DNA of 64,000 nt from Paragordius varius (GCA_964247055.1 OZ176051.1:7564001-7628000), one strand, 5' to 3'. Positions 1,981-64,000 are shown, counted from the stretch's first letter. Program-made: numbers and translations. The notes: generated by a model from the sequence alone, not told the origin.

Positions 1981-2929
1981 CAGGGGTTTGTAGTTAATTT
2001 CTATGTTGACTGCATTAACTTATTTATTCGTATATTAGGTTAAAAAACGAATATTATATACCCTGGAAAGATAGAAAATGACGAATTTCAAAAATAAAAA
2101 CCAAGTATTAGGACCCTAACCTTAAAATTGTTTCTCCAATCCATAAATTTCTATTCAAGTGTTGGTTTTGTAAAAAAATATATAAAAAAATTTAAAATTT
2201 TTAACCTTTTTTCGGTTAGAGCATTCATATTTTTTGCTTTTGGGTGTTTTAGGCTCAAAAATGGTGCTATACATATAATTAAAGTTAAACCTGGATAAAT
2301 CTTTTGTCATCAGTTTACATTTTTCAAATGAAAAACCTGATTCAACAAATTGTTTGAATGGAATATCATGAATCTATTTATTATTATCAAAATTAAACTT
2401 CAGTATAAAAATTAAGAAGACTTTTAAAAGCCACATTTTGAGATCCTAATTTTTGCGTAAATATATCGGTAATATTTTGCCATTGACAACGTACTAAAAT
2501 TATATTACATTATTAAAATATACAATCGGATAAAATATTTGGAATATCCAAATTCTTTTCTCTTAATTTTTGATAAAAATCATTTTCATTATAAGATTTG
2601 TAGGATGAAACGCTAAAATTTGATAAGGATGAATCTTCATTCAGGGTATGTATATGAGAATGTGTTCCCTTTTCAGATAATTCAGTGAACAACTGACTTT
2701 GGGATGATTCAGTATAGTCATCTGTTTCTGGATCTTGCTGTTTAGTACTTTGTAAAAAAGATGGACTAATCTTACCCTTTTTCTCCTTCTTTTTGGTAGT
2801 TTTTGCCTTACGTTTACCCCTTTTGGGACGATCATTAATACTATCAAGAAAGAAATTAGTTGTATCCTCCAATACCTTTTTTCTTGATCTGGTATTGTAT
2901 CTAGTTGTGGTAGAAGAGTCAACATTCAT
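531..2929 (-). CDS. Hypothetical multi-exon protein with a Lys/Arg-rich (NLS-like) and Ser/acidic N-terminus
   Basis: Exons 2929-2524, 2493-2399, 2373-2291, [unresolved ~2290-1926], 1925-1852, 1595-1553 and 914-531 join in phase across GT-AG introns, including 30-nt and 25-nt introns. No family recognised. Confidence 0.7.
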
Positions 2930-3027
2930 TATACATTCTTGAATTCAATATTTCCAGTGCTTTCAAAAGGGATTTCAAATTCCGCGGAGTCTATGTGAAT
3001 TTATGAAATGCAGCTGTTACCTCTACC
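2930..3027. promoter_or_regulatory. Putative bidirectional promoter / 5' UTR region (98 bp between divergent ATGs)
   Basis: The minus-strand ATG at 2929 and plus-strand ATG at 3028 are head to head. The interval contains CG dinucleotides (TTCCGCGGA) in an AT-rich background. Confidence 0.5.
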
Positions 3028-6000
3028 ATGTCGCAAAATAAAGTTGGCCTTTTTCCTCATATATTCCTGGACATAAAAATTAATGATGAATACAGTACTA
3101 CTTATATTAATATTAGTTGGAAAAATTATATTTGAATTATGCGTTGATGAGGGCATACGGATAAGTGAACACTTTTTAGCTCTCTGTACTGGATTTTCAA
3201 GACTATCACCTTCCGATCAAAATGATCCTAATTATCACCCATTTCTCAAGGGGTCATTTATAAAAAATGGTTTTAAAATATTAGTATATTGTAGTCGATA
3301 ATTCAGCCATAGAAATTGGGAGTCAAGAAATTACAAATTTAAATTATCCTGAACAAAAAGCTATCGTAATTTATATATATATTTATCAAAATCTTTTAGG
3401 ACACATCGCTAATTTATTTGGGATGTATTAAAAACGTTACAATTCCTAATCTATATTCGTATTATATACTGTCATCGCATTTTGTAACTATGAAACCAAA
3501 TATCCCATTATATGCTTTCGGTTGCGTGAATAATGGTTTTGGTGTTATTAAACAAATAAAAAATCTTGAAACTTCTGGAAATGGAAAAATATTGAAGGTT
3601 ACGTTAACCTAAATGATTTCATTAATATTTTACTTATTAATTATTTTGGGGTTTGGCCCACAAAACGTATTGTTCTATTTATTTTAAAATATGTGTATTT
3701 TTATATTATTACAAAATATTTGAGTTATTTGTCATATACTCCTGAATTGTAAAACACTGCTAATCTTCTATGGTCAATTAATCATATTTTTCTACTATTT
3801 TTTTAATTTTTTTGAAGAATGCATATTTTTTATTCAAACTTATCGGTTAAGAAGACAATTTCTTTCTTTTAATTAATTATTTTTCTCTTACTTTATAGAA
3901 ATGTACCATTTCTGATTGTGGTATATACGATGGCACCAGCAAAATCTATGAGACAGTAACAGACAAAATATGTGATCCTTATGCCGATTGTCCCGAAGAT
4001 CAATTCGCTCGACTGAAAAATGGCCTACCTATGTCTTATAATGAGGTTTTTAAAAATATTGTTGGTTTTTTTCTTGCATCTTATGTTTTTTACGCGATTG
4101 AAATGTATGTGGTAGGACATTATTTTATAGGGCGAAAAGGTATATAATATAGTATAGTTTTTGGAGATAATGTTTATTTAACATTTATGATATAAATGAT
4201 CATTTATTATTAATTAATAAAAATATAAAACGTGACAAAATTATTAAACAAAATTAGTTAATAAAAAACAATTATTTAAAATAAAAGAATCATATGATAT
4301 GTGTGCAACCCTTCTGTGGGCTTTAATTTAATTAAACTCTTTTTTTCGCTTTTTTGCGATACCATTTTATTACACTGTGCACATAAAGAGGTTTAAATCT
4401 AGTTTGGTTTTGAGACGACGACAATTTAAAATACTTTATTATTGCACATGTGTTAGTTTGTCATAAAAAAACAAAATTGCTTTTTTTAAAAATAAAATTT
4501 GTCTTTTTACCAAATCGATTTATATAATTTAACCGAGCCATGGTATAACATTATCATGGTAACACATACTCCGACAAGAATCGAATTCATATACCATAAA
4601 CAGTTCAAATTCACCCTTGAACAATTTAAATCACCCTAAAAATTAATTAGGTGTTTTCGAACTAATAAAACCCATTAATTAATATGAAATATATATTTAT
4701 GGCATAGTTTATTATTTTTTCACTATTATTTAAATTTAAAACATAACTTTTATTTTTAAAAAATATATGAAAATATAGGTAATTTTTATTCTTAAAAAAC
4801 ATATTTTATTTAAGGGTGAATTTGAATTGTAATTGGTATATATAAAAATGAAAAATTATGATATATAATTGGTTGAGACACCACATTTAATCAGAGTCAA
4901 AGCTACATTTTTTTCGACTTACTATTATGTTTTCCAATTAGTTCATTAGCAATAAGCCCTAATTTTTAAACTTTTGTTGAAATAATTGACTTGATATTAG
5001 AAATTATCTTATCATAAAAGATTTATATATCTAAATTATTAAATTATTTTTAAATTTCAATACCAATTTTAGGTAACGAACTCGTCAATATTAATCCATT
5101 TTAAATTTTTATATTATATATTCAAAAATTCGGAAAAATTGAATAATTATGGGTTATTAGCATTTAAACTAAAATCATATATAATGTATCTTAATACCTT
5201 CAAATAAAACTCATTTTGGTATTATTATAGTATTTAAATAAGCTTTTTTTGTTATAACCAGCATACATGACACATATTTATGTTTTAAACCTTTATACTT
5301 TAATTTAAGTTTAAAATTGATATATTGAGATATCGAAATGTACACTTTAAATAATATTTTTATACAACAAAAAAAATATTATTGAAAGCTTAAATAATAA
5401 ACTATTCATATAAATATATTTAGGTGTGTTCATTAGTGGCGATAGTCAATCACATCAAGTATTTTGGTAAATTTTTGTATCTCAAACAAGATTATGAACT
5501 TAGTCTCTCCAAGTATGCCAAAGCATTGAGGTAGTATAACTTTAATATATTTGATTATATACCATTTTTCATGCAAAATCATCATTTTTTCAACTAAATG
5601 CAACATTTTTTCAACCAAACTCAACATTTTTTCAAGCAAATGCAACATTTTTTCAAGCAAAGACAACGTTTTTTCGAGCAAACGCAACATTTTTTCAAGC
5701 AAAGACAACAATTTTTCAACAAACGCAACATTTTTTCAAGCAAACGCAACATTTTTTCAACCAAAGACAACATTTTTTCATCCAAACGCAACATTTTTTC
5801 AACCAACGACAACATTTTTTCAAGCAAAAACAACAATTTTTTTAAAATAAAAAACCATTTTTTTATTTTAAGACATATTAAATTTAAAGTTAATGTAAAT
5901 TAATTTTAGCGTAAAATTATGATTTTTGTTGTTTTATCATCAATATTTAATGGTATGATTGATTTTCAAACATTTTAATTTATCCCATAAATTGCATTAT

Positions 6001-6996
6001 TTATTTATAAATTTTTTTTCATCAATCAATACAATTTGCGCTTTAAGACTCTCTTTAAAAATTAATATCCTTCGCTTAAAATTCCTTACATTTTTGCAGT
6101 TTCCATACCGTTATTTTGTGTGTAAATTATCTATTTTTTAAATTTTAACTAATATCCCTATTTATTAGTTTTTGAATCAAAATTAATATTTTCATAGTAA
6201 AACAACTTTGTTTGGAAATTTTCTTTAATTTATCAATATTATAAATTTATTATTGTTTTAAACTAAATATTACCATCATTAACTCACAAAACATAGATAT
6301 TTTTTAATATTAATGTATAGAAAATAATAAGGATATACGGCTCTTATGAAAGAAATGTATTCACTTAAAGGTTTAGGTTAAATAAAAAAATAGGTAATTA
6401 TCGAATAATGATTATTTTAGTGCCTCATTAATAAACGTTAGAATCAAAATTAAAATATCAAAGGATCAACTTGAAGTGTTCTAGGACTAAGTTTAAAGTT
6501 AAAAGAACAATCTTGAAGCGCAGTATAGATTGATTAGGTGAAACTCAAGTTGTAAAAGAAAATAATAATTAATATAAATAAATAATGCAATTTATGGGAT
6601 AAATTAAAAATGTTTGAAAATCAATCATACCATTAAATATTGATGATATAACAATAAAAATGATAATTCTACGCTAAAATTAATTTATATTAACTTTAAA
6701 TTTAATATGTCTTAAAATAAAAAAATGGTTTTTTATGTTAAAAAAATGTTGTTTGCTTGAAAAAATGTTGTCGTTGGTTGAAAAAATGTTGCGTTTGGAT
6801 GAAAAAATGTTGTCTTTGGTTGAAAAAATGTTGCGTTTGCTTGAAAAAATGTTGCGTTTGCTTGACAAAATGCTGTCTTTGCTTGAAAAAATGTTGCGTT
6901 TGCTCGAAAAAATGTTGTCTTTGCTTGAAAAAATGTTGCGTTTGCTTGAAAAAATGTTGAGTTTGGTTGAAAATATGATGTTTTTGCATGAAAAAT

Positions 6997-7039
<43 letters not shown>

Positions 7040-9181: not shown

Positions 9182-9223
<42 letters not shown>

Positions 9224-9282
9224 GAAACGAACAAAAAATAAATTATTTGGAAAATATTATAAAAATTAAATAAATTTGCGTG

Positions 9283-10199
9283 TCAGCGAAATTGGTAAAC
9301 CTGTGTATCGTCTTCAGGGACATAACTTAGATTGAGTGATTGAAACCTAAATATGTCAAATTAGGTATATTATTCAACACACCCAACATATAATATAAAA
9401 GGTAAACTTTTAACAAACAACAATGGCATTTTTTTATTGATTATCTCAAAAAAGCTTAGGATTATAAAGTTATTCTAATTTTCTTTGATTCATTGGTTTT
9501 TGTTTAAAAATATTTTTTCACAACATTCTTGTGCGATGACCTTTGTTTACATATAAATAACTGTATATATGCCACAAAATGTCTTACCACTCTGAACTCC
9601 TATGATAATAGTATCCCTCTATAGTTGACGTGGATTTTTGGAAACATATGTAATAAAACCCGGCAAAAGATGCTCCATTTATTTCTTTAATTGTATGATC
9701 GGGAACCAAAAAATGTTCTTTCCATCTCATATATACATAATCTGATTTCTTAAGTTCATCATAATCAAAATCGTCAGAATTAAAAGTTTTAGAATATTGA
9801 TAAAAGTTTAGAAATTTTCCCTGTTATAAACATATAAAAAAAAGGTAAACCCAATGCTTTTTATCAACTTCTTCGTCTGCTTCCCATTTACGGGTTAAGA
9901 AAGGAAATTTTTTACTGATAATTTCTCCATCAAAAAATGTGGTTAATTTAGGATATTCTAGTGTTAAACCCTTAATTTTCAAATAACCACAGATATAACT
10001 ACTTTTGTTATCTACATTCTTTAAAATTATATCATATAGCAACCAATAATATAACTTCCACATCATAACAATTCCCTTTACTTTTTTGATGTCCTTGAAA
10101 ACGAGCCCCACTATACAAAGGGCAAGTAAATAAACCGTTTGGACTAGAATTAAAGGGTGGATTGGGATTAATATTTGATGTTATGTTATTTGAAACCAT
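9283..10199 (-). CDS. GID4: GID4 / Vid24 homolog (substrate receptor of the CTLH/GID E3 ligase)
   Basis: Exons 10199-10044, 10018-9851, 9820-9588 and 9346-9283 translate to [22 protein letters not shown]...[20 protein letters not shown]...[33 protein letters not shown]...[17 protein letters not shown]...VYQFR*, very close to GID4. The start ATG is inferred. Confidence 0.95.
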
Positions 10200-11464
10200 A
10201 TGGGAATATGCAAAGATATTCAAAAGTCTGTTTGTATAATAAATTTATTTTTTTACATTACATGAATTTTGCATTTATTGAAGTTCTAATTCATTAGCAC
10301 GTATCTTAGTTAATATTATAAATTTTTTTAAATATTGAGCCCGGTAATAATTTTCAAATTGATGAAACCATTCGCCCTCAAAACACTCTTTATCATTTTA
10401 CCACACTACTCATTTTTGGAGTCCATTTACAAAAACATATTATTATTTTAAATTGATTATCAACATTGCATTCGAAATAAATTTACAATTTAAATTCTTT
10501 AATTAGTTAGTAGTGAAATCTTTAGCGTTTATTATATTAAATATTTTACAAGATTTATATATAATTATTAATTTTAAATTTTCGAGAATCAAATTTTTTT
10601 GCGGGTTAACGGAATCGATTATAGCATATTTTTATATGCCATGTTCTTAAATATTAGCAAAGCTTTTCTAATAATTTATCATCTTTTGTATCCAATTTGA
10701 AGATAATTAGTCAAAGTTTATCAAATAAATATTATTAGCAAAGGGTTTAATTGCATATAATGCTTAAATTACATAAAAAAAAGTTTCCAAAATAATTCTA
10801 ACCACTATCAAATCTGCCCTAGGCCACACCAAAATCTCTAAGTTTTACTTGATTATTTTTATCACCTCCGAATCTACTTCTCTTAGGTCGTAGGATGTTA
10901 ATTTTTTTACCGCATGAAAGCAAGCCATGACTTGAAAATCAAGTCAAAAAAATTATTTTATCACCCCACCCTTAGAGTCTAAGATTGGGACAGCTAAAAC
11001 CCATTAATAGAAACAGCATGAAAATATATCAAGTTTTTGCTGATAAAATTTAGCCTAAGCTTTTATAATGTAATTATTTACGTTTCTAACCATAATAAGC
11101 AATTAGTTGCCTGTTGCATTAGCGATTTATAATTCTAACGGAAATTCGCCTTAAAACATGATAGAACCAAACATCTGATATAAAATTATTATATACTAAA
11201 AAATTGCTGGTATATGTAATATCAAAAATTATGAAACTAAAATAATATTATATTTAACCATAAGAAAATATATTTGCCTCTTGTCACCATTTTAAAAATA
11301 AATAATGACGGCAAAAAAGTAAAGATCTTTTTTAATTTTATAGATATGTATCATAAAGAATCATAATTTAAAATTGAGCTCAATGCTAAAAATATGTTTT
11401 AATATATTAAAATTTTAAATGGCCGTCCATAATAGCCGAAATTATTAGTTTTAATCATCTATAA

Positions 11465-17698: not shown

Positions 17699-20600
17699 AT
17701 GAAGATTCTAAATTTTATAAGTATTTATTTTGAATAAATAGTATTTATACAGCAAAACATTAATCCATCATTCGCATTATTTAATCGATTGCCAGAAAAT
17801 CTAATTCATTAGTGTAATTTAATTTATAATTGAGACAACACTTAAATCTTCTTACATTTTAACTAATTTTTATAATGAAAGAAAACGACAATATTTTTTC
17901 CTTTTTAACAAAGTATAGTATATTTAAAATCTATGATGACTAAATTAGTTATCACAAACATATCCACAAACAGCGAAGCATGGCCCTCTAATATTGATCT
18001 CTTTATTAAAATTTATATTATGCTATTAGGTTATTTCAAAACAGCTCGATTTATTTTGGCACTTCTGGGGTTTCTGGGTTTCGTTATGGTATTTGCTCTT
18101 CGGGCAAACCTTAGTGTTGCAATTATTACAATGGTCAATACAACTGCTCATTCTAACCCCAAAACGCAGTCATATTGCGCTAACAAAAATGCTTCAAAAA
18201 CAGCACAACCGAAACAAAGGAGCGTTCGAAAAAATATTATAGTAAATGCATTTAACAAATATTTAAAAACTATTAATACTGATTCAAAACCATATAATTT
18301 TTTCTAAAAATTTAGGAAAATCTGGTTATTATCTAGTGTTAATTTACTTTTCATGCTCAATTAAATAACCTTCTGACCGATTAAAAATATGCTTTTTAAC
18401 AAAATGGTGCTTCTATTTAAAACTCAATTTAAAAAGTATTTACATATAGCTCAATATTATAATCGATATTCAATTTTTGCAGATAGGTGAATTCAATTGG
18501 GATGCCGCTGTTCAAGGGTATGTCCTTGCTGCCTTTTATTATGGTTATACGATTACTCAAATCCCGGGTGGTTGGTTAACTACCATAAGTGCAAAATATA
18601 CCGTTGGCTTAGGGATACTTTGGACAGCTATCCTTACCCTATTTACCCCTATGGCTGCGAGGATGAGCCCATGGGCCCTTTTTGTATTACGATTTTTTCA
18701 GGGATTAGGACAGGTTTGATTAACATACATATGTATTTGACCCTATTATAATGACCTTTATCCCTCATAATGAGCCCTTTTAAATAAATTGCGTCTATTT
18801 CCTAATTTGTTCATGCTGATAATCGTAAAGTTTTACAAATATAGATTTAAGTCCTAGTTTCACCCTACCTATTATTCCAGGGGCTGGCAACGCACGGTCT
18901 GCGGCCGGCGGCCCAAATAATTATATCTAATTTTGGATAGATTCTTTATATAAAAATGTATTTTTTGTTCGAATAATAAGATTTTTGAAACAATTTTTAT
19001 AAATACATAATTTATAATTTTATAATCATTCATTATCCAGTTTTTCTTAAATGTTTGGCACACTGATTTTTTTACCAAAAGGGCCAGCCATACGCCGATT
19101 TCTGTATAAGTTTAAGTGTGTTTTGCATAATAATGAATCAAAGGAATTTTAAAATAGCTTATAATGAAACTTAAAATTAATTGAAGTTTTGTTAAAAGAG
19201 TGAAATTTAATTTTTATCAAAAAAGGGTCATGATGCAGTTATTTAACCATGTACTTTTTCCATCTGGACATTTCAGACGGGGTTCACGATGTATAATATT
19301 TTGATTGTACTAAAAGGGTGTAATATCTCCAGCCCTACATGCCATGTTATCAAAATGGGCGCCACCCCTAGAACGAAGTCAGTTGGTAGCTTTTACATAC
19401 GCGGGTATTTCAAATTACAAGTTTTTAGGTGTCCCTATGGGAAATGTAATAGCATATCCTCTGTGTGGCTGGTTAAGTCTGAATGGTTTCGCTGGAGGCT
19501 GGCCCTCTGTTTTTTACGTTACCGGTTAGTTTTTACTAGTAATCTATATATACCATACGTGAACTTGCAAAATGTTTCCAAATTATATTAGCTATATCAA
19601 ATTGGGTTTTTGTTTACACTTGCATTTTTCTATGACATAATATAAAAAATTAATTATACAATTTTTTGTAAATACTATCCCATACAATATGTCATTAAAA
19701 CGATTCTAGGTTTATATGTACGCAAGTATTCCAACTTTTGTTTTTATCTTAATATAAAAAAACACCATTTCATTTTTTGCTATTTTAATATCTTAAACCT
19801 AGTATTTTTTGTAATTTCGAATTGTATTGATTTTATTAATGTCAATTGTAAACTGAAATATATATAAACAGGGATTATGGGGTGCATTTGGTTTATATTG
19901 TGGGTGTTTTTTGTTTATGAAACGCCTCAACAACATCCCAGAATCTCGCATAAAGAATTAGAGTACCTAATAAAAACCGTGCCGGCTCTCCCAAAAAGGG
20001 TAATCATCTGTTTTATTTATTTAAGAAACACGATTTCCTATGTATTGTAACAATATTACTCGGTTATGAATGCATTTGTCTATAACCGCATATTAAAATA
20101 ACCAGTCAAAATTTTTGAAACAAATGTTTAAAAGGAAATAATAAAACTAGTTGTTATAAAACACTGTTTATTTTATAATATTATATATATGTATGTAATA
20201 AATTGCATTCATAAATAGTTATAGCGGTCATTTTTTTTCAACGTCGAAAACCTAAATAGTTACCAAACAACATATATGCACAATAAATATATTCAACTTT
20301 ATAAGCGTAAAAGCAAATTTATATCGATTCGGGCTATTAATAACTGATGATTTTTTTATTCTCGTTTAGAAAATACTTCAATGATATAAAATAAAGGCAA
20401 AAAATAGGGTTTCAAGCCATGTAATATTGATTTACTTTTGATTATATAATTAATACTGAACAACTATTTTTGTTTATACATTTACTTTTAAGAAACATGT
20501 TCCATGGCTAAAAATTTTTACTTCCCTCCCGTTTTGGGCTATCGCTGCTGCTCATTTTGCCTATAATTGGGGTCTTTACACTTGGATAACTGTTATGCCG

Positions 20601-21498: not shown

Positions 21499-21586
21499 AA
21501 TTATTGCAAACATAATTATAGTTAGTTAGTATAATAATATAATATATATATCCTTTATAAAACAATCAAATTATTATTATTAAAAT

Positions 21587-24500
21587 TTATTTAGTGGTAG
21601 AAAATTGGTCCGGGGTCGAAATTTGTGGAGAATCATTCACTAAAAATGTATGATGTTGATTATGAGTATTTAAATCGTTCAACATTTCAGATTCTCCTTG
21701 GTTAATACTGCTGCTTGCATTGGGTGCAAGTATCAAAGGCATCCAAATCATACCGGGAGGCGGTGGAGGCAAATATTTAAATGGCAATGTAAAATCTGTG
21801 TGGACACTAAATGTGAAAAAATGCGAAAAATTTTAATTTCGAACCAAGTATTTAATTTTCCCAAAAAAGGGTAAATTATGGCTTAGCTTTTGACCATTTT
21901 AATTAACTAACATAATAGATATATCTTTAAAAAAAAATTAATGCAAAAAACCAATACATAAAACATAGCCATTTATCTCGTTTGAAATTATTTGAAAAAA
22001 AACCAGACGATAGATCTATTTTAAAAATTTAAAAAACGTTATCGAAAACCTGACGCCTTGATTCTGACAAGTAACTTTCTGATCTATAAAGCCATTAACA
22101 CCATTTTGCAATGCATGATGTCCATTTTCAAGGTTGTATTGAATATAATTTAAGTGTTGGTTCAATTGGAATCCGGGATACGCATGAGAATGCATATCTA
22201 GGGACGGAAAACTATTTTGAGCATTGTGACCAATGGTTAAGTTATTGAATGAATTAGAAAGCGTATCAAAATCGCCTGGGAGTTTAAATTTGTCAATCAT
22301 GGTTTCATTATTCATCTCCTTCTAAATCAAATTAATATTTAGTTTAACAACGATTTTAATTTCTTATGACTTAAGTTCATAATTTTATGAAGGCAAAATG
22401 CTCCTAGGTTATCGCTAAAAGAAAGATAATTAAATATTAAACCGCTTCCTCAGCGTTATGGAACCCATTGTGAGGATGATGACCATTGCTACTTGACTCC
22501 CCATTTTCGTAGCCAAGATTCAAAGCTTTTTCATTCATTTCTCTGGGTTGTTTTTTACGGCGGACAAGCGTTCCGTTAGATGCATTAAGTTGTTCAAATT
22601 TCCCTCCATTTTCACCTCTAAAAGGTTGTAAAATGCAATTATCAATAATCATTGTTTTCAAATGTGAACTAATGAAATTACCTAGTTAACCAAAATTTAT
22701 CATTGTTTGGGGCATGACAGACTTCTTCGTTACGGTAATTACCAGTGGTCTTAGGGCCCATGTAAAGGCCCTTGTTACCATACCTACGTCTGTTTCGTTT
22801 TATCAAGTGATCAGCATTCGCCGTCACCAAATTGAGTTGCATGGGACATGGATATAATTGATCCGTTTTAACTGTAAATCTATAGGAACGGAAAAATACC
22901 ACTGTTAAAATGTATGAATTTTTCGCAATAAAGTATTTTATAATTTAATATCTTAAATTAAGTACGGTCGCTCCCTTTCCCCTCCCACAAAAATAATAGT
23001 CCCTCAATCAAAAAATAACCCTTTTGAACAGCGCTCTTTCCAACATATGGCTTCCTGTGCAGGCATTTAGCACCGCCATCAATTATACTTTGCCAATTTC
23101 TCACATTGCACCGATGATTAACATTTACAAAACGTGTGTTTACTTTGTTTTTTACAAATCAATAAATTGCAAAACAAATTATATATATTTGTAATCTAAT
23201 TCACCATAGCTATTATTATATTTGCATTAAAACATACTTTTTCCCCAACTCCTCAATAAACACTAAAATAGCTTCTGGTTGACCACCCTTCCCCCCATGA
23301 CAATTTTCCCGGATAATTTCTTGTATGTTAGCCATGAAATATGATGGTGATGATGATACATTTGTACATATAATGTTATTCATGTCAGTACTTTTCCAAT
23401 CTTGTTCATTCAATTTGACTAAACACGGGTCCCCGGGTGAATAATCGAAATGGAGCACAGCTTTTAACTGAATCTTTTGATTATCTAAATAAAATATTTT
23501 TGGTGTTGATCAATAAATAAATGCTTGTGCTTTTAAATGAAAAACTAGCATTGTTAGTTTTTATCGACGTACAGAGTAATAAACAATTTTAACCAAGACA
23601 CAGGCTAATTGTATATATTATATTTATATATATATATATATATATACCATTTACAGTTTAAATTCACCCTTAAACAATTTAAATTCACCCTCGAACAATT
23701 CAAATTCACCCTCAAATAAATAACATGTTTTTTAAGATTAAAAATTACCTATATTTTAATATATTTTTAAAAAATAAAATTTTGTTTTAAATTAAAATAA
23801 TATTGAAAAAAATAATTAATTATGCCAAAAAGATATATTTTATATTAATAATGATTTATATTAGTTCGAAAACACATAATTTATTTTTAGGGTGAATTTG
23901 AATTGTTTGAGGGTGAAATTGAATTGTTTAAGGGTGAATTTGAACTGTAAATGGTATATATTAATTGTGGCCATATTTTTTTCTATAAGGAAGCTATCAT
24001 TTACAGACTTATTAAAGACTATTTAATAAATCAAGCGGCCGGTTTTATCATTTTTTGAGAGATTTTAAATGATTATTATTAAATTGTTTTTCCATCAATA
24101 AAACAAAAAAGTATTGATTTTTAACCTGTCAATGCATTGAATTATAGGTTGCTGGTAGATAAGCTTATAATGGTACATTCAAATTTTTAATAAATTTAAA
24201 AGCAATCAGGAAAACATAATTTTTTATACACCTATATCTACAGATTAAATAGTTATCACGAATGTTGACTGCAATAAGTGATAAAACCAGTTATTAGACT
24301 AAGCAAAACTTGGATTTTAATTTCACGATAAAAAGGTTTGACAAAATAAACACTTCCATATCTCAAAATATTAAATAAACCTCGTTTCGCATCAAACCAC
24401 GCATCTAAACCGACATTTCTAAAAATGTAGGGATCCAAAGATTTCAGCATTTTCAGTGGTATGGAAAATGTTCGTGAATACTTTCGCAAAATATTTTCCT

Positions 24501-33007: not shown

Positions 33008-33018
33008 TATTAATGACA

Positions 33019-39000: not shown

Positions 39001-42000
39001 GTAATTATTAGCGGAGGTGGTGATAGTTTAAGTTTAAGAGCCTTGGCTAGATCAGAAGCAGCCTTTCGCCGTGTACCACTATCTAAAAAAATTAATTTTT
39101 TATTTTAGTCGATTTGTTTTGGAAAAACATAAAAAAATTGTCAATTAAATTTATTAAATTTATCTAAATATTATTTTGCTTTTTTCATATATATTTAAAA
39201 AATTGATCGCCAATAGAGTTTTAATAAGGAAAACTCTATAATATCGAGCCGTGTGCTAATATCTAAAAAATTGTTAATTTTAGCTTTTGTTTTAAAATTC
39301 GTAAATTTATTAAATTTATCTAAATATTATTTTGCTTTGTTTAATGTTTCTTATATATTTTTTTAAAATTCATCGCTAATCACATTATAATAAAAGATCA
39401 TATGGAAAATTGGATTAACCGCGAACCAACACCTAAAATTAAATTTTGATCTTATTAAAATGTTTAATAAAATAAAAAAATGCAAATTTATTTTAATTTA
39501 TCCGAATATTTTAATTTTCATATATCATATATACATTTATTTAAAATTTATCGCCATTAGAGTTATAAATATACAAAAATTTGGATTAAATAAAAGATAA
39601 ACATGTTAATCATATATTATAGAATTTAAAAATTAATTTTTAAACCTGATGATTCCAAATCAAAACGCACGTATTCAAAGGGATTATCTTCAAAATTTTC
39701 AACATCGCTTTCCCGCAAATGCATGTTTGGTATAATGAGTTTTGAGCAAATATCCTGGCACAGTAAAGATTTCCAATCTAAAATACGTAAGTAGTAACAT
39801 ATTTAAGTTTATAATAATATTTTTGAACGGGTTAAAATTTTTAAAGTAAGCAATACCGTATAAATATACAGTGGTATTAAGGTTAAAATAAAATAATTTA
39901 TATCATATATATACAAATTTATCAACCGAATAATTGTTTAGATGATATAAATTTTTAATTAATTATGTTTAAAAGCGATCCCGTCACGGTAAATGTATAA
40001 ATGTAATGCATTTATTACGTGTCAGACACAAGACTTTATAAATTAAATTTTTTAAAAATCATGTTTTCAATGAAAATGGAAAATAAAATTTGTTTAGTGC
40101 GGAGGTGTCCAACACAAATGGCTTTGCGGGCCGCATTCGGAAATTATATGGGCATTCGTAACTGTTTTATTAGATTTTAAGTATAAAATTGCAAAAACAC
40201 ATTTTTATTAGCTAGTTTACAACCTAAATTCGGAGAGATTTATTTAGAAAATTGGTTTAAAATAATAAATGTTACTTAAAATAATTTTGCATTTGAAATT
40301 TCTCGCGGGCCGTAGAAAGCCGCGGGCTGCGTATTAAACACCCCTAGTAAATATTCGTCAAATATAAAATTAAGCCTAAAAAAGCATTAATACTAAACTA
40401 AACAATAAATTTGGGATATGTGTAACCCTTTATTTGCTATGCTGATCTTTACAAAACATTCTAAACAGAGTGTGTCCAACACAAATGGCTTCGCAGGCCG
40501 TATTTTTGACTTAAGAAAGACGGCAGGCCGCATTCAAAGAATATATAGGCATTCATAAAAATTTTATTAGATTTCCCAACGTGGTGTTGGAAAAATGCGA
40601 TGACAATATAAATATTTAGACCAATTTTGAGAGTTAGATGCCGAAATTTATTATTTTTATAGAAAATTGAAATATTTTAAGAAAGGATTTCGGAAATATT
40701 TGTGCAGGTTAGGAATTATAATATTTAATATTTTTAATTTTTTCGCAGGCCCAACATACTATCTCAAAGGGCTGCAAAACTATTGATTTCTTAATAATCA
40801 ATATAAAATAAAGATACCATCATTTGAAAGGGAAGTGGGTATAATTATTGATAGAGGAGGTAGAAATTGACTAAGGTCTTCACTTTTTTGTATGGCTATT
40901 GCAAGATACTCCATACAAGATATTATAAGCTATATAACAATATAAAATGAAATGTATATAAATGGATATTTACGTGCTAATTTATAAAAATTCAATTATT
41001 TGGTATAAAGTTTGAAAAAGAATTATAGTAACGACGCCCCCTTATAATAAGCATTTTTGACATAAAATAAGCAATCATCTTATGGTGATTTTCACGCACT
41101 TTTCCAATTTTGAAATAGGTTTCTATTTTTATAATAGTTCAAAGCTGGTCATATTTTTTAGCTAATTTATAAATATAGCTATCAAAATAAACCAAAAAAA
41201 CATTCAAAAAGATAAAAGTACATTAATGTTTTTTGATTTTTTAAAAGTATATCGGTAGAATAATATTACTTATTGCAGTTTGAATTTTAACGGTTGCCTA
41301 TTTCAAGCTATAATTGCAACATAGAAGTTATGGAAAAAAGAAAGAAAAATATTGTTTATTTAACATTTTGTAGTTTTCTCCATACACTATTGTTTTACGA
41401 AATTCCCAACTATAGTGTGAAATAAGCAACCATTAATATGCATACTCTAATAATTAAGCAGTTATAAAGTCATGTAAAGGAGGTCAACCCTACTTTCGGA
41501 TTAAATAAAAAAAATACCAAATCGTATTTAGGTTTGTCGGACAGATTGATTGCAATGTTCCAAACGCTTGAAAAAAATGGTAACATATAACTCCGAAATT
41601 CCTCATCATACTTTTGGGCATAAAGGCTTAGGATATCACAAATTTTACTCTTTAAAACATCAATGATATCTGGATTATCTTCAGACTGTAACAAAAAATA
41701 AATGAAACAATTATTATTATATTACCATTTAAACCTATATATATTATATTTGAAAAAGCTTAAACTATATACAAGATATTTGATACATGGTAGTATATTT
41801 TTCAACAAATGAAATATAAAAGGTATGCATACTCAATTGATGTGTGAAAATATTTTGAATGCTAATTAACAAGGACATATCTAATCTGCAACTAACTGCA
41901 AAGAATGTCAAATATCATATCATTTCAAGTTTTATCAGTTTTTATTAGGTTATATTTTAGATTATGTGTATAAAACCTTTTGATAAACTACTGTTTCCCT

Positions 42001-43907
42001 ATTCATATTTGAAGAAATTTATAACCACAAATATATTTTAAAAAGATAAAATAAAATAATTTCTACTTCTAAAGGTGTAATAGCAGGTGACATAATTAGC
42101 AGTTTGATAAAACCTTCCATCCAAATCTTCATATTGTCCTCAAAATATTCTGGCAAATCCTAAACATAAAAAAATATTAAATAAGTATTTCGAAAAAATT
42201 AAGAGAAAATTAATTAAAATCACTTGGTAATTGAGACTATAAAAAATTTCGCAAATATATGTAAGGGAATTGACAATTATATTTAAGGCTTTGGGTTCTG
42301 ACGCATATTGTTCAAGTAATCGGATAGATCCCTTTATCAATAAAATAAAAAAATATTATAATTAGATTGCAAATAAATTACAAAATTATGTTTAACGCTG
42401 AACTCAACATTTGAATACAAGTATCTTAATCCTAAAACACATCATTTTCTTATATGGTTCAATCTGAAAGCATTCTTTAAACCAGGGTCATCAAAAACGC
42501 GGCCTCTTGACCGTAAGCGGCCATTTGAAATATTTATGTAGCTTACAATTTCGAAAACAAAAATTTTACAAAATCTAAGAAAAATTGATATTCTTAAACA
42601 AATTTTCTGTATATGTCTTAAATTTTAAAAAAGTAGTTTTTACAGTCTAAAATAATTGTTAGTGCCCAAATATTTTGGGAACGGCCCACCGGAATTTATA
42701 ATCCAAAAATGCGACCCACGAAGCCATTTGGGACACCCCTGATTTAAATATTTCAAAGAATTAGCAAAGATTAAAAATTAAATTATGCTTTAGCCATTGT
42801 ATTCTTAAAGTTTTAAGTTCGTCTTAGAATATAAAAACACAATACATTACCAAAAAAATAAAAAATGTTGCGAAATACTTTATTAAATTATTTTAAAAAA
42901 TGGTGATTAATAATAGTCAAAGAATATTTTATTAACATATAATAAAATGTATACATGAAGTTATATATTTCAATATTATTATGTTGTAAAAATTATCGTA
43001 AATTTAATTAATAAATACCTGAAATAATTCCGTCAATGGTTGGGCAAAATTAATAAGCACCAATTTGATTTCACTCCACAACCGATCTGATTTAAATTCG
43101 TGCTGATATCTAAAATAAAAGAAAGACATTAATTTGTAAATAAACGGAAACAAATTTTTATATGCCAAAACATGTTCTAAAAATCGCATATATAAGAATA
43201 TTATCTCAAATAAGAAATTTATTAAAAAAGATTCAGATTAAAATTGTAAATATCATGCAGATCTATGATTATATACTTAGGATCATAAGATTCCAATAAC
43301 TCATACTTATATTAAACTTTGATTGTGTAAATACAAAATAACCTTAAAAAAATGGAATTAGCCGTCTGTAGGACGCCATTTATCATTCTAAAGTCTCCAG
43401 ATTTGAATTTTTCCACCATGTCCGATAATAGATCTGGCCATTTATCTGGAAAATCTTCTTTACCAATGATACTAATTACTTCACCCAACTAAAAATATTT
43501 ATCTTAAAATGTAAAAAAACTTGTTTTTGGATGTTTTCAGGCATGTTTGTCATAACATCTACAATTTGACCCTTCAAATGTTTCCTATCATCTTCAGAAA
43601 TAATGGATGGCATGTCACCTTCTTCAATCTAATATATGTTAATTAAAATAAACCTTCCAATTATTTTTAACATAATTTTTTAAGATAATGGATGAACTAA
43701 GCCGAACATTAGGATCTGCATCTGCCTTTGATATCAAAGCCAAAAGTAAAATTGAAAATCCTGGATTTTTTTCAGCACCTTCGATATATGATTCAGCTAG
43801 CAGATATAGATATATTAAATACCATTTTTACGTCTGGCAGCATCAGAATGAAATGTTTCTTTAATATTAAAATCAAGAGCATCTAAATTTTGAATGTTGA
43901 TTGCCAT
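33019..43907 (-). CDS. CSE1L: Exportin-2 / CSE1L (CAS), importin-alpha re-exporter
   Basis: About 20 exons. Motifs RRKNAESYIE, ILKNYVKNNWK, IGKEDFPDKWPDLL, RYQHEFKSDRLWSEIKLVL, DLPEYFEDNM, LYAQKYDEEF, FEDNPFEYVRFDLE...TRRKAASDL, IKADALKF, EFVPYVFQ, LWDKPGNIPALVRLL, KANDH and EYRAAFSKL follow the CSE1L order. The C-terminal end (stop at 33019 or a further exon) is unresolved. Confidence 0.95.
40100..40346. mobile_element. hAT-type MITE family B (CAGGGGTGTCCAA-like TIR)
   Basis: CGGAGGTGTCCAACAC...GCGGGCCGC at the left end and TTAAACACCCCTA at the right end. Lies in a CSE1L intron. Confidence 0.7.
40466..40780. mobile_element. hAT-type MITE family B, adjacent degenerate copy
   Basis: CAGAGTGTGTCCAACACAAATGGCTTCGCAGGCCG is nearly identical to the left end of the 40100 copy. 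The right end is eroded. Confidence 0.55.
42483..42741. mobile_element. hAT-type MITE family B
   Basis: CAGGGTCATCAAA...TTTGGGACACCCCTG. The flanks CTTTAAAC / ATTTAAAT match at 6 of 8 positions, consistent with a decayed 8-bp hAT TSD. Confidence 0.7.
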
Positions 43908-52297: not shown

Positions 52298-52984
52298 TTA
52301 AACATAAAGTATGCGATTGGAATGTTCATTATTGTTTAGCTTTAATATATGTGGAAGAGAGGATATATTATCATTAATGTTATGATTTGAACCGGAATCA
52401 TTAGGGTTACGGTCAGCATTTCTTTGAGGTAAATTTACTGATTTTATGGAATTAGTTGTATTGGCAACCGGGATATCATAATTAAACATATTGTCATTAG
52501 GGATTTTTGGGGTTTGTATTTCATCACTCCTATTTTCATTGATACCATTATGATAATTGGGATTTTCCAAAAAAGTTACAATATTTTGCTCAGGTTGTTT
52601 TATACTTTCAGTATATGATTTTGCGATTTGATTTTCACCCCCATTATGGATAACGGAGGATCTGTTAGGAACTATTTGTAATCGATCTTTAGTTAAATCT
52701 ACCATAAAAGTGTCCAAATTTTCAGGTCGGCCTTTATAGTTATTTAGAGTGGGTATTTTGCTTAATGCTCTTTGTTCTTTTTTATTTTTTAATTTCAGTG
52801 ATCGGAGGTAGGCAGTGGGTGCTGTTTGCCTTCGTTTATTTATGTTAGTTGCTTCATTTATAGGGTTAGACCCAATTAACCATGGATGATTGCCTTGATT
52901 AAGCCATTCGGTGAACACTTTTTTAAGTTTCATAACCGGGCTATTAGGAGCACTCCTTGATAATGCGTTTTGTTTTAATATCAT
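52298..52984 (-). CDS. Intronless 228-aa orphan ORF, in frame with the upstream 561-aa ORF
   Basis: ORF track. The junction reads AAT TTA TAA ACC ATG ATA on the minus strand. Confidence 0.6.
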   Translation of the reverse strand: MILKQNALSRSAPNSPVMKLKKVFTEWLNQGNHPWLIGSNPINEATNINKRRQTAPTAYLRSLKLKNKKEQRALSKIPTLNNYKGRPENLDTFMVDLTKDRLQIVPNRSSVIHNGGENQIAKSYTESIKQPEQNIVTFLENPNYHNGINENRSDEIQTPKIPNDNMFNYDIPVANTTNSIKSVNLPQRNADRNPNDSGSNHNINDNISSLPHILKLNNNEHSNRILYV

Positions 52985-52987
52985 GGT

Positions 52988-54673
52988 TTATAAATTTTTG
53001 GTAGCCATTTCCTTTGCGTTTGCAATCGTTTTTCGATCACTATCATACACGCGCAATTTTCCAGATGGAAACGTTACAATTTGAACGGGGGAGATTTGAT
53101 CCGTTACGCCTGACTTGGATTTCCCTATGTCCATGTGAAAACCTTTGTGTATAACAGGGTAGGGTACTTTTACTGTTTGAGTCGTACATTGTTCATCATC
53201 AACATCTACCATGGAATCTCCATCCATAAACATATCATATTTTTGTGTATTTATAAGTTCGGATTTATCAGAGATATGGCTGCGTGGCTGTTTTTTATGG
53301 AAAGAGCCAAGCCCTAAAAATTTCCCTGAAAACAAACGGGGCGGTGGGGGAGGTGCTTGAAAAACGCTAATATCTTTCTGTGGAATAATTGTTCCTTTAT
53401 CAAGTACTACGTTACCATTAGAATCAGTTATGTACGGTCTAGGTATAATATTATTTATAATGATTCTGTCGCGCATTGTGGCATCATATTTCTCATACCT
53501 TTTCCCTCCTGGCTTTTCAACAATCGTTTGGGATGTTTTTTTGTCCTTTTTGCTGGAAACGACTTTTTTCTTACTGCTAAATCCGCATTTACAACCAAAT
53601 TTATCTAAACAATTTGTAGCTTTGAGGAGATAACCAGTCCCTAAGAGAGCTGCTAATCCGACTGCCGCACCCGCAACATAAGCACCTGTATTCCGATTTT
53701 TCTTTCTTTTGACTGGATTTTGCTGTTTATCGGTGCTTGCTAAAGTGGCGTTTGGATAGGATGTTTGCATTCCAGGTGTGGACAATGTTCGATTTCTGAT
53801 TATAATCGTATTCTTATATGGTAATTCTTGTTGTACATAAATGGGTTTTGAGGTTCCATGTCGCTTATCACCTTTATCTAAAGTGTCTTTGACATGTTCC
53901 TTCAGGTCATCGGGATCAGGTGAGATATCACCACGTAATTTCTTTAATTTATATTTGATGATTGTATTATCATTTATATTTTGTCGTTTAGATCGGACAA
54001 CTTTATTAGTTTTTAGGGCATTCTCGTCACTTTTATTTGTTATCGCATCAACATCTAGTTTGTTCACAGTATCATGTTTAATCATGAAAAACTGTAAACA
54101 GATAAAGGATGACATTTTGTTATCGTTAGCAGATGGAACACTAGCATAAATATCAAATTTGTGGGTAATGCATGGTACCATTATTTCATTTGATATCACA
54201 GTACCTGCCTTTTGAGCATCTTTCTGGGCCAAAGGACACCGAATACGTATCCGGTTTTGTTGAAACACACCATAAAGTTCTGTTAAGTTTGGTTTTTCGC
54301 CTAAAATAAGTGAAAGTTTACGGACCGATTGATTACCCTGATCCCATGCTATTTCCGGGTTAGGTGGTTTATAAAGTTCAGAAGTTTTATACCATTGAGT
54401 GCTAATGATTTTCTTTAAATATCTCTGATTAATCTCGGAATTGAATTTAGCGTGCAAATTCAGTCTTATATCGTGATCTAAACAAGTCAATCGCATTATT
54501 TTATTTTGTCGTGAGTTTGGAGTTTGTGATGAAATATTGGTTACTTGAGGATTAGATATTGTAAAATGTTTACCAGATATCAATAGAGAATGGGTTGTTA
54601 TCATTTTCTTATTTTTTGTTTTATTAGATTGTTGGGTGTAATTTTCTCTGATTACATATGTATGAGATGGCAA
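52988..54673 (-). CDS. Intronless 561-aa orphan ORF; putative single-pass membrane protein with an RSKR motif and a Gly/Ala-rich hydrophobic segment
   Basis: A 1.7-kb stop-free frame in roughly 75% AT DNA is very unlikely by chance. It contains VVRSKR, KRKKNRNTGAYVAGAAVGLAALLGTGYLL, CLDKFGCKC and APPPPPR. The true start is unclear: first ATG near 54604, AG acceptor near 54650. Confidence 0.8.
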   Translation of the reverse strand: MPSHTYVIRENYTQQSNKTKNKKMITTHSLLISGKHFTISNPQVTNISSQTPNSRQNKIMRLTCLDHDIRLNLHAKFNSEINQRYLKKIISTQWYKTSELYKPPNPEIAWDQGNQSVRKLSLILGEKPNLTELYGVFQQNRIRIRCPLAQKDAQKAGTVISNEIMVPCITHKFDIYASVPSANDNKMSSFICLQFFMIKHDTVNKLDVDAITNKSDENALKTNKVVRSKRQNINDNTIIKYKLKKLRGDISPDPDDLKEHVKDTLDKGDKRHGTSKPIYVQQELPYKNTIIIRNRTLSTPGMQTSYPNATLASTDKQQNPVKRKKNRNTGAYVAGAAVGLAALLGTGYLLKATNCLDKFGCKCGFSSKKKVVSSKKDKKTSQTIVEKPGGKRYEKYDATMRDRIIINNIIPRPYITDSNGNVVLDKGTIIPQKDISVFQAPPPPPRLFSGKFLGLGSFHKKQPRSHISDKSELINTQKYDMFMDGDSMVDVDDEQCTTQTVKVPYPVIHKGFHMDIGKSKSGVTDQISPVQIVTFPSGKLRVYDSDRKTIANAKEMATKNL

Positions 54674-55126
54674 ATTAACTATTTTAATGGGGACAGGTGT
54701 GAATTTCGATCCATGGTCTTGAGCTGTTTCTAACGATTAAATAGTAAATTTGATAAAATAAATTATAAACTTATTTAATTTTGATATATAAAAGCGTCAA
54801 AAAAAATTTATTAACAAAAATTTAGAGTGTTGGCGTTTGTTTATACTTTATGCGTATAGTCAAACCCGAACTCCACAATTTTTCAATCTTCGGTGTCAGT
54901 CGTGGACCGGCGGGAGTTTTTAATACCCATGGTCCTTAACTCAAATTTATAACTTACTCTTTGAAAATTAGAAAAAAGGGGACTTTAGAATATATATGTT
55001 ACAAAAATGTATTAAATAGAAGAGGAATTTAAATTTAAAGCTTTGATTAAAATAAAAGCATAAAGCACAGAAAATATTTGAAATAAGGTTTTGCATAAGG
55101 GAAATCTATTAGTTTCCAACTATATA

Positions 55127-55402
55127 CCATTTACACATAAAATTCACCATTTACCACAAATTGACCCTTGAACCTTCAAATTCACCCTAAAAATATTATG
55201 TGTTTTTAAGCTAATCCGACTACTTATTGTTGATATAAATCATTTTTTCTGTATTATGTAAATTTTAAATAAAGTTTTATTATTATAAAAATCAAAATAT
55301 ATAGGTAATTTTTGATTTCCCAAAACATACTTAATTTTTAGGATACTTGAAATGTTCAAGGGTTAATTTGAAATGTTTTAGGGTGATTTGAGCGTAAATA
55401 TA
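55127..55402. mobile_element. MITE family A, degenerate copy 5
   Basis: TATATA-CCATTTACAC...AAATTCACCC at the left end and eroded GGGTTAATTTG / GGGTGATTTG repeats at the right end. Confidence 0.65.
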
Positions 55403-56454
55403 TGTATGAGGTAACACTTACTTTGCTAAATGTCCATATGTTTATGTACGAAAATCGGTTAATTTTAAAATGGTACCTAACTTATCGAACTTTTACTTAC
55501 CTGCTGATATTTCGAATTATTGTAATAGAGTCGAAGACACTAATTCCGATATTGGTAAATTAAAAATAGGAGGAGCTTACTTCCAAACAAACATATGCAC
55601 CTTAATAATATTATAGAATAGTTAATATGCTTTAGGGAAAAATTATATGTTTTACATTTTTATATTTATAACGTTATCAAAATGTTAGTATCTCTCAGAG
55701 AGGTTTTTTAACACTTCATTAACTTTTCACTTTTTTGTCCTAGTTTACATTTTGAGGTAGTTTTATTATATCCAGAGTTCAACATTTTCTAAATAATCTA
55801 CAGTTTTAAAAGTTATTTTATATCAAATTGTCATGTATTAAATAAAAAAAACTTATATTTTTTACAACTTTGTGTCTATAGAGCCTAAAATTGGGACCTC
55901 CAACATAATCGGAACAAACAGCTGATATTAAAATAATATTAAGTTCATGGTAAAATGTAATTTGAAGCTTTTTAAATTAATTATTTACATTTTCCAACCA
56001 TAATATACATTTATTTGCCTGTTGCTTTCGCGATATCAAAATTTGTGGAAGAAAATGGCGACAAAAAAGTTTGATGAGGATTTTTTTACATTTTTAATTA
56101 AAAAAATTTTTTGTATAATGTGGTCAAAAGACAAAAAAGCATATATTTAAATTCGGCTTAATACCTTAATTTAGATATTCAAATGATTCTGGGATATTTA
56201 ACTACCCCAAAAGGTAATGAAGTGTTAATAAACATGCATTGGCATTTAACAAAGCGAAGTGTTAAAGTCGTATAAAAATTTGATAAATGGAAAATATATG
56301 GAGAGGGGTGAAGTGAAACCAAAACCTAAATCAAAAATAACGCTTCAGATCTGTGGAAATAACTGAAATAAGAATGATTATATTCATATTTTTTCATCTT
56401 TAAATTAGGTGTATATTATGAGTGAGGTTAAATTAATGTTAGATAGAATTATAA

Positions 56455-60200: not shown

Positions 60201-60369
60201 TAAACAATTAAGCATTTTCTATTTATTACATGCACAAAATTTTTTCTGCCGAATACGGTAATAACCAGTTCTATTTTTTTATAAATATCAAACAGATTCG
60301 GTTGATTTAAAATGTCGGCAAGAACTTAACTCTAAAAATGCGATTTTTTATATATACTAAATCGTAAAT

Positions 60370-62300: not shown

Positions 62301-62519
62301 TGGAGAGATATCCACAAAAATCGAAAATTACTTTTAAATTATTTATAAGGACGATAAAGCACAATCATAATTAATACATTTTCCTATTTATCTATATATT
62401 TATTTCATCAATTTTTGTATACCTCCCGATATTTAACTCAATGTAATGCATAATAATTATATATAACTATGGGGATGATAATTGGTTAATTTAAACTATA
62501 ATACATAAGTTTGCCCTAA

Positions 62520-64000
62520 ATACTAAAGGTCGGTTTGTCAAATGGATACTAGCAATAAAGGCAAATTATCTTACCGTATATGGTAATATAATAAGAACAC
62601 TTGTTACCAAACTCGTTTTAAACAATTCTGCCATCCTACAATATACAATAACTTGGACACTAAAGAACAAAAAATGGGTCAAAAAGTCTAATGCAATCAG
62701 CATAAGGACACGATTAGCGGCACTTTATTCCACGGTCAACAACTTAATCGCTTTTTGCTTAAAGCAAAACATTATGGTCGCATGCCACATATTTCAAGTA
62801 AGTTATATACAATATATTGGTTATAAATATAAATTGGTAAAATAGAAACAGTGTTACACATTTCTTAAAGTTCGGACACAAATGTTTTCTTAAAGAGCTT
62901 GTGACTATTCTTGTGATTTGATGAAGCTCATAATTATTAATAAGGAAGGGGATATTTGTAATTTAGATGTAGAACCTAATGTTTTAATTGAAAAGGTATT
63001 TTATTTTTTTTATTTAGTTAAAAATAATGGCTTTGGGACATTTTGGAGCATATTTGGATAGTCCCACAGAAAAACAAAGAACTCTATCTCGCTTTAGATT
63101 ATTATATATAAAACAGTTTAGAAAGTTAGATGAATTAAAAAGTATATCCGAAGAAGGTCTTATAGATGAAGGTTATTAGCCCGTAATTTTTAGATGAATT
63201 GTTATTAAAGAAAAGTCCACCCATTTTTTACGATGAAAAAGTTTTCTTTTAAATTTATACCTTGTATAGAGAGATTATCCTTTAGGGCCATCAATAAATG
63301 AGATAATGGTTGCTACAGCTTCTATATCAATTAAACCAGCGCCTAAACCAAATTCAAAAACCGTTTCCCCTAACGTAAATCCTTTTTGTAAATTTATTAT
63401 AGTTCCAATTGGAGATACGAAAAGTTTTACTTACATTGATACAAACATCACACAGTCTTATTTGTTTAAATCCTGAATCAAAGCACGTCTTTCAAATTTT
63501 ACAAAGTAAATAATAAAATGTTTTTTGATGGTATCATACTAAATATCTTTACATTTTGGCAAATTCTATGTAATAAAGGAAAAAATTTTCCTGTAATATT
63601 AAATATGCATAAATTTTTTATTGTTAAATCACAAAATTAGCTATACAATTTTCAAGTATATGAGTGTATATTTTAAGCTAGAGAATTTTTGATAGCTTTT
63701 AATGTCCAAATTTATAACTACGTTTTTAACTCTAATTTTATAATTTAAACTTTCCTTTTTTTATATTATGTTAATTAAAATTATTTTGGTTAATCATTTT
63801 TTATTTTCGGCTTAGCTTCACAAACTCTTTCCCAAACACCTAATCTTAGCGGTTCTAACACAGCTGTGAATAATCCAAATAACTCCAATAATAATGGCGA
63901 TCATACCCCAAACGATGGTGGTTTAGACGCTATTGCAAATTCTCCCGCCCTTCGAAATTTGGAAGAAATGGGTTTTAATAAAAAATTGGCTATGCGGGCT
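62520..64000 (+). CDS. UBAC1: UBAC1 / KPC2 (Ubl-UBA protein), partial; continues beyond the window
   Basis: Exons ~62520-62788, 63018-63171, 63194-63240, 63270-63374, 63403-63505 and 63816-64000 join in phase. EEGLIDEDELLLKK, FQLEIRKVLLTLIQTSHSLICLNPE and the UBA start LRNLEEMGFNKKLAMRA match UBAC1. The start codon is unresolved. Confidence 0.8.

Follow-up and report, generated by a model that had tools for sequence, protein, structure and literature searches.

In a 64,000-nt stretch of the Paragordius varius genome (GCA_964247055.1 OZ176051.1:7564001-7628000; the whole stretch is referred to as the window, with positions counted from its first letter), protein-coding genes including GID4 and CSE1L are interrupted by segments of 22–34 nt that begin with GT and end with AG. 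These micro-introns, as we term them, are very probably ordinary U2-type GT-AG spliceosomal introns of ancient origin that have shrunk in this lineage to a size near the spliceosomal minimum; both their excision from RNA in this species and the mode of their recognition are what we infer. A first-pass annotation had listed 17 such segments of 22–34 nt, and all exist as it described them, with a 5′ GT and a 3′ AG on the strand given. The same termini bound an additional micro-intron in CSE1L (34895-34920) that was absent from that list. In 7 of these 18 cases (two in GID4, four in CSE1L and one in an SLC17 transporter gene), the encoded protein is colinear with its orthologs and the break falls exactly at the GT and the AG. 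Position and phase are common to introns of other lineages in five of the five cases tested (against Trichoplax, Corticium, Pinctada and an animal contig, L005), such that the two GID4 and the first three CSE1L micro-introns occupy the same codon and phase as introns of 0.2–7 kb elsewhere in animals. On these sequence comparisons, the five are strongly supported as putative introns.

Micro-introns of GID4 and CSE1L

The GID4 gene contains two micro-introns.

9286-10244, minus strand: GID4 gene, four coding exons with introns of 25, 30 and 241 nt
10019-10043, minus strand: GID4 intron 1, 25 nt, phase 0; Pfam profile contiguous across it (2-25, 27-84)
9821-9850, minus strand: GID4 intron 2, 30 nt, phase 0, in-frame stop inside; Pfam profile contiguous across it (27-84, 86-152)

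Three exon pieces of the gene match Pfam PF09783, the first at profile positions 2-25, the second at 27-84 and the third at 86-152, so that the match is contiguous over both micro-introns. In the alignment to a sturgeon GID4 fragment (P0001), 9821-9850 appears as a gap of exactly 10 codons, stop included, and at the positions of introns 1 and 2 a locus of the Pinctada pearl oyster (L006) carries introns of ∼7.3 kb and ∼0.6 kb with identical phases. Micro-introns thereby constitute two of the three GID4 introns, the third (9347-9587) being 241 nt long with a GTAAGA donor. The GID4 protein shares 85% identity with its vertebrate and mollusc counterparts, a conservation too high for it to place the species, and the intron positions of CSE1L and GID4 are common to placozoan, sponge and oyster, in agreement with the earlier assignment of the window to an animal genome. 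A protist origin was ruled out by the animal-specific intron positions, and pseudogenes were ruled out by the conservation of the exons.

The public Pinctada imbricata GID4 model (P0002, 125 aa) omits the exon equivalent to window positions 9851-10018, and this exon is found in the oyster DNA at L006 8474-8638 (GCA_033119305.1). From the sequence, the public model seems to have been misannotated here.

The CSE1L gene, which encodes exportin-2, contains four micro-introns.

At least 34345-43907, minus strand: CSE1L/exportin-2 gene, ∼22 introns, of which four are 25–32 nt and the others 64 nt to ∼1.8 kb
43797-43822, minus strand: CSE1L intron 1, 26 nt, phase 1; flanks fall on ortholog residues 1-27 and 30-76
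43629-43653, minus strand: CSE1L intron 2, 25 nt, phase 0; ortholog residues 30-76 and 80-111, with a 1-residue indel
43489-43520, minus strand: CSE1L intron 3, 32 nt, phase 0; ortholog residues 80-111 and 112-160
34895-34920, minus strand: further CSE1L micro-intron, 26 nt, phase 1; contiguous over ortholog residues to 787, 788 (split) and 789-813

The gene was identified by matches to the Pfam families IBN_N and Cse1, and one of its exons retrieved full-length orthologs (exportin-2 of Corticium, Trichoplax, Macrostomum and others). The named representatives consulted belong to distant phyla, and a search with a CSE1L exon yielded two hits, both distant. Aligned piecewise, exons 1-4 fall on residues 1-27, 30-76, 80-111 and 112-160 of sponge exportin-2; a Protein Data Bank (PDB) search with the exon 3 piece gave no meaningful match. 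With ortholog contiguity imposed, there is a single GT-AG solution at each of junctions 1 and 2, whereas the solution at junction 3 is one of two. The first intron of both Corticium and Trichoplax agrees with intron 1 in codon and phase, and at this site L005 carries an acceptor of phase 1. Trichoplax has an intron within one residue of intron 2 (at the indel) and another at the position identical to intron 3, and both micro-introns match exactly the positions of introns of ∼2.5 kb and ∼1.9 kb in L005.

Sequencing runs and the level at which the segments are removed

The DNA run X1 covers the entire 6-kb CSE1L stretch including the micro-introns, with no joint skipping them, and the micro-intron segments are thus genomic and present in two independent DNA data sets. 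An assembly error is ruled out by their presence in X1. Removal of the segments from DNA, in the manner of the internal eliminated sequences (IESs) of ciliates or of programmed elimination, would be an alternative to splicing. Their size range is like that of Paramecium IESs; the bounds of the segments, however, are GT..AG and not TA, five of them lie at conserved spliceosomal intron positions, and X1 retains them, at least in the tissue sampled, which makes this explanation extremely improbable and leaves splicing as the preferred reading.

Within the CSE1L introns, the depth of X1 reaches spikes of up to ∼412,000, compared with ∼500–1,000 nearby, at 41405-41446 and also at 40001-40200 and 40401-40600. 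These regions show many loose ends and opposite-strand joints and contain very high-copy short repeats resembling miniature inverted-repeat transposable elements.

Three further runs (X8-X10), whose status as RNA is guessed, can be aligned to only 41 nt of the conserved CSE1L exon (43436-43476) at ∼90% identity, and a divergence of ∼10% in a conserved exon indicates that they derive from a diverged relative. The contigs of all three pass from the start of exon 4 straight into exon 3, reading ..ETIQRQ directly followed by LGQA at CSE1L junction 3, where 20 of 30 positions are identical to the exon–exon sequence versus 12 of 30 to the unspliced DNA. These runs show a contiguous message in a relative, and not splicing in P. 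varius itself. Among the runs matching 52301-56300, the only stretch on which this search was made, none is on record as RNA. X8-X10 bear the same species label as the best-matching DNA run despite their divergence in the conserved exon, so that either the label spans more than one species or the organism of the window is mislabelled.

A candidate intron in an SLC17 transporter gene

A further candidate lies in a gene of the SLC17 family.

19405-19428, plus strand: candidate intron in an SLC17 (sialin/VGLUT-like) gene, 24 nt, phase 1, in frame and stop-free

The open reading frame (ORF) 19314-19526 matches sialin and VGLUT structures. On Smith–Waterman alignment to human sialin, the read-through ORF shows a gap of eight residues that coincides exactly with 19405-19428, and the flanking pieces fall on sialin residues 176-204, 205 and 206 onward. 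Alternatively, the segment could be kept and add eight residues to the translated transporter, a reading that would accord with its location within a single continuous open frame and with the HMMER alignment of the read-through to sialin, which opened no gap. As the Smith–Waterman gap coincides with the exact GT..AG bounds and excision of the segment restores the register of the AG-xxx-G-x-VI-xx-PL-x-G motif, we consider such an insertion unlikely. The comparison with sialin gives good support to 19405-19428 as a candidate intron.

Candidates in less certain genes

Eight candidates are located in genes resembling cyclophilins (three), OTU proteins (two) and UBAC1 (three), and have moderate support. 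The earlier claim that excision also restores homology in the recognisable genes holds for GID4, CSE1L and the SLC17 gene, whereas family support for the cyclophilin-like, OTU-like and UBAC1-like genes is weak or was established by eye.

3007-3609, plus strand: cyclophilin-like gene, three candidate micro-introns
3095-3116, plus strand: cyclophilin-like intron 1, 22 nt, phase 1; unites 29 and 60 open codons
3270-3294, plus strand: cyclophilin-like intron 2, 25 nt, phase 1; 64 and 44 codons, on the basis of frame, with weakly coding-like codon usage
3366-3399, plus strand: cyclophilin-like intron 3, 34 nt, phase 0; 27 and 70 codons
26653-26683, minus strand: OTU-like intron, 31 nt, phase 0; 37 and 28 codons, a Cys-loop-like motif running across the junction (by eye)
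26127-26160, minus strand: OTU-like intron, 34 nt, phase 0; 47 and 41 codons, a His-loop-like motif downstream (by eye)
63172-63193, plus strand: UBAC1-like intron, 22 nt, phase 1; 51 and 18 codons
63241-63269, plus strand: UBAC1-like intron, 29 nt, phase 0; 18 and 68 codons, flanking codon-usage percentiles 0.99 and 0.96
63375-63402, plus strand: UBAC1-like intron (weak), 28 nt, phase 0; 35 and 36 codons

In the cyclophilin-like gene, the piece that follows 3095-3116 aligns from its very first residue with 11 cyclophilin chains, starting on their G(R/K)I..EL strand (weak E-values of 0.07–1.5), and the last piece matches the Pro_isomerase profile at 122-150 (weak, E 0.11). The OTU-like and UBAC1-like identities are weaker suggestions, read chiefly from motifs in the translations and from a partial UBA-like match (E 0.013) that lies downstream of 63172-63193 at the end of the window. 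The OTU-like gene found no support in Pfam, and PDB searches with its two exons were blank, as was that with UBAC1-like exon 1. For 63375-63402, the read-through stays open for 33 further codons and the downstream piece has a codon-usage percentile of 0.37. In the middle of the OTU-like gene (26569-26301, minus strand), no GT-AG pair of plausible length connects the open stretches, and the gene model may lack an exon, or a junction of non-canonical type, within 26290-26570.

The remaining three candidates occur in two genes without a recognised family, and are weakly supported by open frames and weak codon usage.

2374-2398, minus strand: intron of a family-less Lys-rich gene (2158-2944), 25 nt, phase 0; 37 and 72 codons, percentiles 0.91 and 0.92
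2494-2523, minus strand: intron of the same Lys-rich gene, 30 nt, phase 1, stop inside; 140 and 32 codons
24499-24529, minus strand: intron of a second family-less gene (24259-24628), 31 nt, phase 0; 33 and 80 codons, the weakest case

Neither gene (2158-2944 and 24259-24628) yielded a Pfam family or a usable look-alike in a protein atlas search, and the open frames that flank 24499-24529 are of a size expected by chance in this window.

Splice signals, size classes and the splicing machinery

Of the 17 listed segments, 7 have A and 10 have T at position +3, and none has G at +5, such that the 5′ signal is reduced to about GTa. At the 3′ end, T is present at −3 in 15 of the 17 (background 0.30) and at −6 in 15 of the 17, and a weak excess of A is seen at −9 to −12. 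The GC content of the micro-introns (18%) lies below that of the exons (32%).

Introns of 64–1,800 nt occur in the same genes with canonical GTAAGT or GTAAGA donors and, once, a perfect TACTAAC box. In CSE1L, the longer introns measured 64, 72, 233, ∼381 and ∼687 nt and up to ∼1.8 kb, and the 72-nt intron (35007-35078, minus strand) has a GTAAGT donor and, 11 nt before the AG, a TACTAAC box that matches the yeast type perfectly. Most introns in these genes exceed 30 nt, micro-introns representing 4 of ∼22 in CSE1L and 2 of 3 in GID4, with the others at 64–1,800 nt. The class that was described earlier as window-wide is thus present but is not the norm. The micro-introns tend to occur consecutively at the 5′ ends of genes, as introns 1 and 2 of GID4, introns 1-3 of CSE1L and introns 1-3 of the UBAC1-like gene, and later introns are mostly long.

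These features would fit a model in which ancestral introns, at positions common to other animals, were shortened in this lineage to near the tolerated minimum, giving rise to a discrete size class that tends to lie in runs at 5′ ends within transcripts that also hold introns of 64 nt to kilobases. The micro-introns would probably be recognised by intron definition, through a minimal 5′ signal (GTA or GTT) and, at the 3′ end, a short stretch rich in T that terminates in TAG or YAG, and a conventional splicing machinery would handle both size classes. The first-pass annotation had instead proposed that a remodelled or reduced spliceosome, in which parts of the U1/U2 small nuclear ribonucleoproteins, SF1 or U2AF may be lost or truncated, enables the use of 22-nt introns. 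A 5′ site of only GT plus A or T and the lack of a branch consensus resemble the reduced signals of dicyemids and myxobolids (PMC13644364), and would suit such a proposal. Against it, the same genes hold introns of 64–1,800 nt with GTAAGT/GTAAGA donors and a TACTAAC box, and U2 snRNA and U2AF1/2 are conserved in myxozoans that have introns of this kind (PMC13644364). As long introns with canonical signals lie in the same transcripts, the machinery has not lost the ability to recognise them; this points to a conventional spliceosome, and the reduced form is accordingly disfavoured as improbable. Rfam and tRNA scans of the 64-kb window detected no snRNA or tRNA genes.

Chance controls and the weight of the evidence

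Retention of 16 of the 17 listed segments leads to a frameshift or an in-frame stop, and excision unites two open stretches. The sole exception is 19405-19428 (24 nt), which sits within a single continuous open frame and whose removal the frame does not need. The earlier claim that removal restores the reading frame is therefore borne out for the 16, but not required for 19405-19428, and as a property it distinguishes GT..AG no better than control dinucleotide pairs.

Several observations weigh against an interpretation of the segments as shrunken introns. Short GT..AG pairs that bridge open frames are no commoner in the window than TG..GA, GT..GA, TG..AG, AG..GT and other control pairs, which were matched in composition and counted with and without a filter for T at −3, with the same outcome; frame restoration was therefore dropped as evidence, and the case rests on homology. 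Solid homology is lacking for 11 of the 18 cases, and given that GT-AG shows no excess over the controls, these 11 may include chance picks. The preference for TAG may in part result from the way the first-pass annotation selected its candidates, with two of the five best-proven introns ending in CAG and AAG, and a TRAY branch motif is present in 8 of the 18 introns, a count reached by 71% of shuffles and hence no enrichment. The SLC17 segment is in frame without a stop and is thus translatable. Finally, excision has been deduced from homology, and X8-X10, the candidate RNA runs, differ by ∼10% even where the exon is conserved.

In an alternative reading, some of the 17, mainly those in the two family-less genes together with 63375-63402, would not be introns but random GT..AG pairs flanked by open frames that arose by chance. 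A composition-based estimate expects ∼16 open frames of 70–80 codons by chance in the window, control pairs connect open frames as frequently as GT-AG does, and the family-less genes have neither a family match nor more than weak codon-usage support for their single pieces. On the other hand, the candidates match the proven introns in length range and 3′ motif, the 140-codon exon that adjoins 2494-2523 far exceeds chance length, and the 19 unverified exon pieces are coding-like as a group. Relative to a null of 1,035 other stop-free open stretches, the mean codon-usage percentile of these 19 pieces is ∼0.79; collectively they are coding-like and individually weak. Chance pairing among these candidates is therefore a possibility to be taken seriously, but we regard it as the less probable outcome, and the reading of the segments as micro-introns is retained.

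Relation to known short introns

Short introns of nematodes are characterized by a UUUUCAG 3′ splice site, and those of Caenorhabditis elegans have a modal length of ∼47 nt and a practical minimum of ∼40 nt. The micro-introns resemble them in the T-rich tract abutting the AG, the lack of a branch consensus and the preference for short introns, but differ from those of C. elegans in their length of 22–34 nt and in that a TAG end is commoner than CAG. Until September 2026, animals were believed to have no introns of <30 nt; among 51 metazoan genomes they are now described in Myxobolidae and Dicyema only, where they are explained through genome reduction in two parasitic lineages with compact genomes, and further lineages are predicted (PMC13644364, Mol Biol Evol, September 2026). 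A close parallel is Dicyema japonicum (PMC13644364, citing Lu 2019 and Zverkov 2019), likewise an animal with GT-AG introns of <30 nt and a 5′ signal of GT plus one weak base. As in dicyemids, the intron positions are conserved and neither a branch site nor a polypyrimidine tract stands out clearly; unlike in dicyemids, whose compact genome has short introns almost throughout, micro-introns make up only part of the introns here and introns contain high-copy repeats. The myxobolids Henneguya, Thelohanellus and Myxobolus (median 22–27 nt) are similar in length and in canonical GT-AG termini, and short introns of Henneguya neighbour short introns (PMC13644364), a clustering that is also seen here. 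Whereas myxobolids are fast-evolving cnidarians with small genomes, GID4 here is 85% identical to that of vertebrates and the size distribution has two classes. With ciliates (Paramecium ∼25 nt, Stentor 15–16 nt; PMC13644364, PMC5014332) the micro-introns share the size class, AT-richness and minimal signals, but ciliates are unicellular and essentially all of their introns are tiny. The likeness in size to dicyemid and ciliate introns noted at the outset is upheld for this GT-AG class of 22–34 nt.

Turning to hairworms, a full-text search found no report in the literature that links Nematomorpha to intron length. A preprint on the Gordionus montsenyensis genome reports a GC content of 26.93%, a repeat fraction of 64% that consists mostly of DNA transposons, and a BUSCO score of 71.6%; the word ‘intron’ is absent from it, as it likewise is from a comparative hairworm preprint; the GC content of the window (26%) is close to that published for G. 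montsenyensis. The description of the system as under-described is hence valid in part: animal introns of <30 nt have been published for Myxobolidae and Dicyema (PMC13644364), and for hairworms no report was found.

The genes of the window do not have a compact, repeat-poor architecture, as their kb-sized introns hold high-copy repeats. The evidence is evenly poised on whether this is a third independent animal lineage (probably Nematomorpha) with introns of <30 nt, forming a discrete, 5′-clustered class in a genome that is large, rich in transposons and still has introns of kb size. If so, extreme intron shortening would not be a by-product of genome compaction, the two being separable in a further lineage because micro-introns lie in the same genes as kb-sized introns filled with repeats. 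Two splicing regimes could then also be compared within a single transcript.

There is, in addition, a practical implication for annotation. Some gene finders accept no intron shorter than about 40 nt, and genes of the GID4 type would be unreadable to ORF callers or to predictors with such a minimum. Hairworm genomes have been reported to show ‘rampant loss of universal genes’ and ∼72% BUSCO; if the micro-introns are real and gene finders break such genes, part of this loss and of the ∼72% BUSCO could be an annotation artefact, and gene-loss claims and completeness scores would need a re-check that is aware of micro-introns.

Other features of the window

At 29389-29922 on the minus strand, an ORF of 178 aa encodes a SOUL haem-binding domain (Pfam E 2.9e-8), and no relative at E ≤ 0.001 was found for it among 5.8 billion proteins of comparable length. 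The stretch 52298-54673 (minus strand) carries two long intronless ORFs of 561 and 228 aa, which match no Pfam family and have no identical entry in the gene collection. Part of this stretch occurs in runs under three different organism labels, and it may represent a mobile or lineage-specific element.

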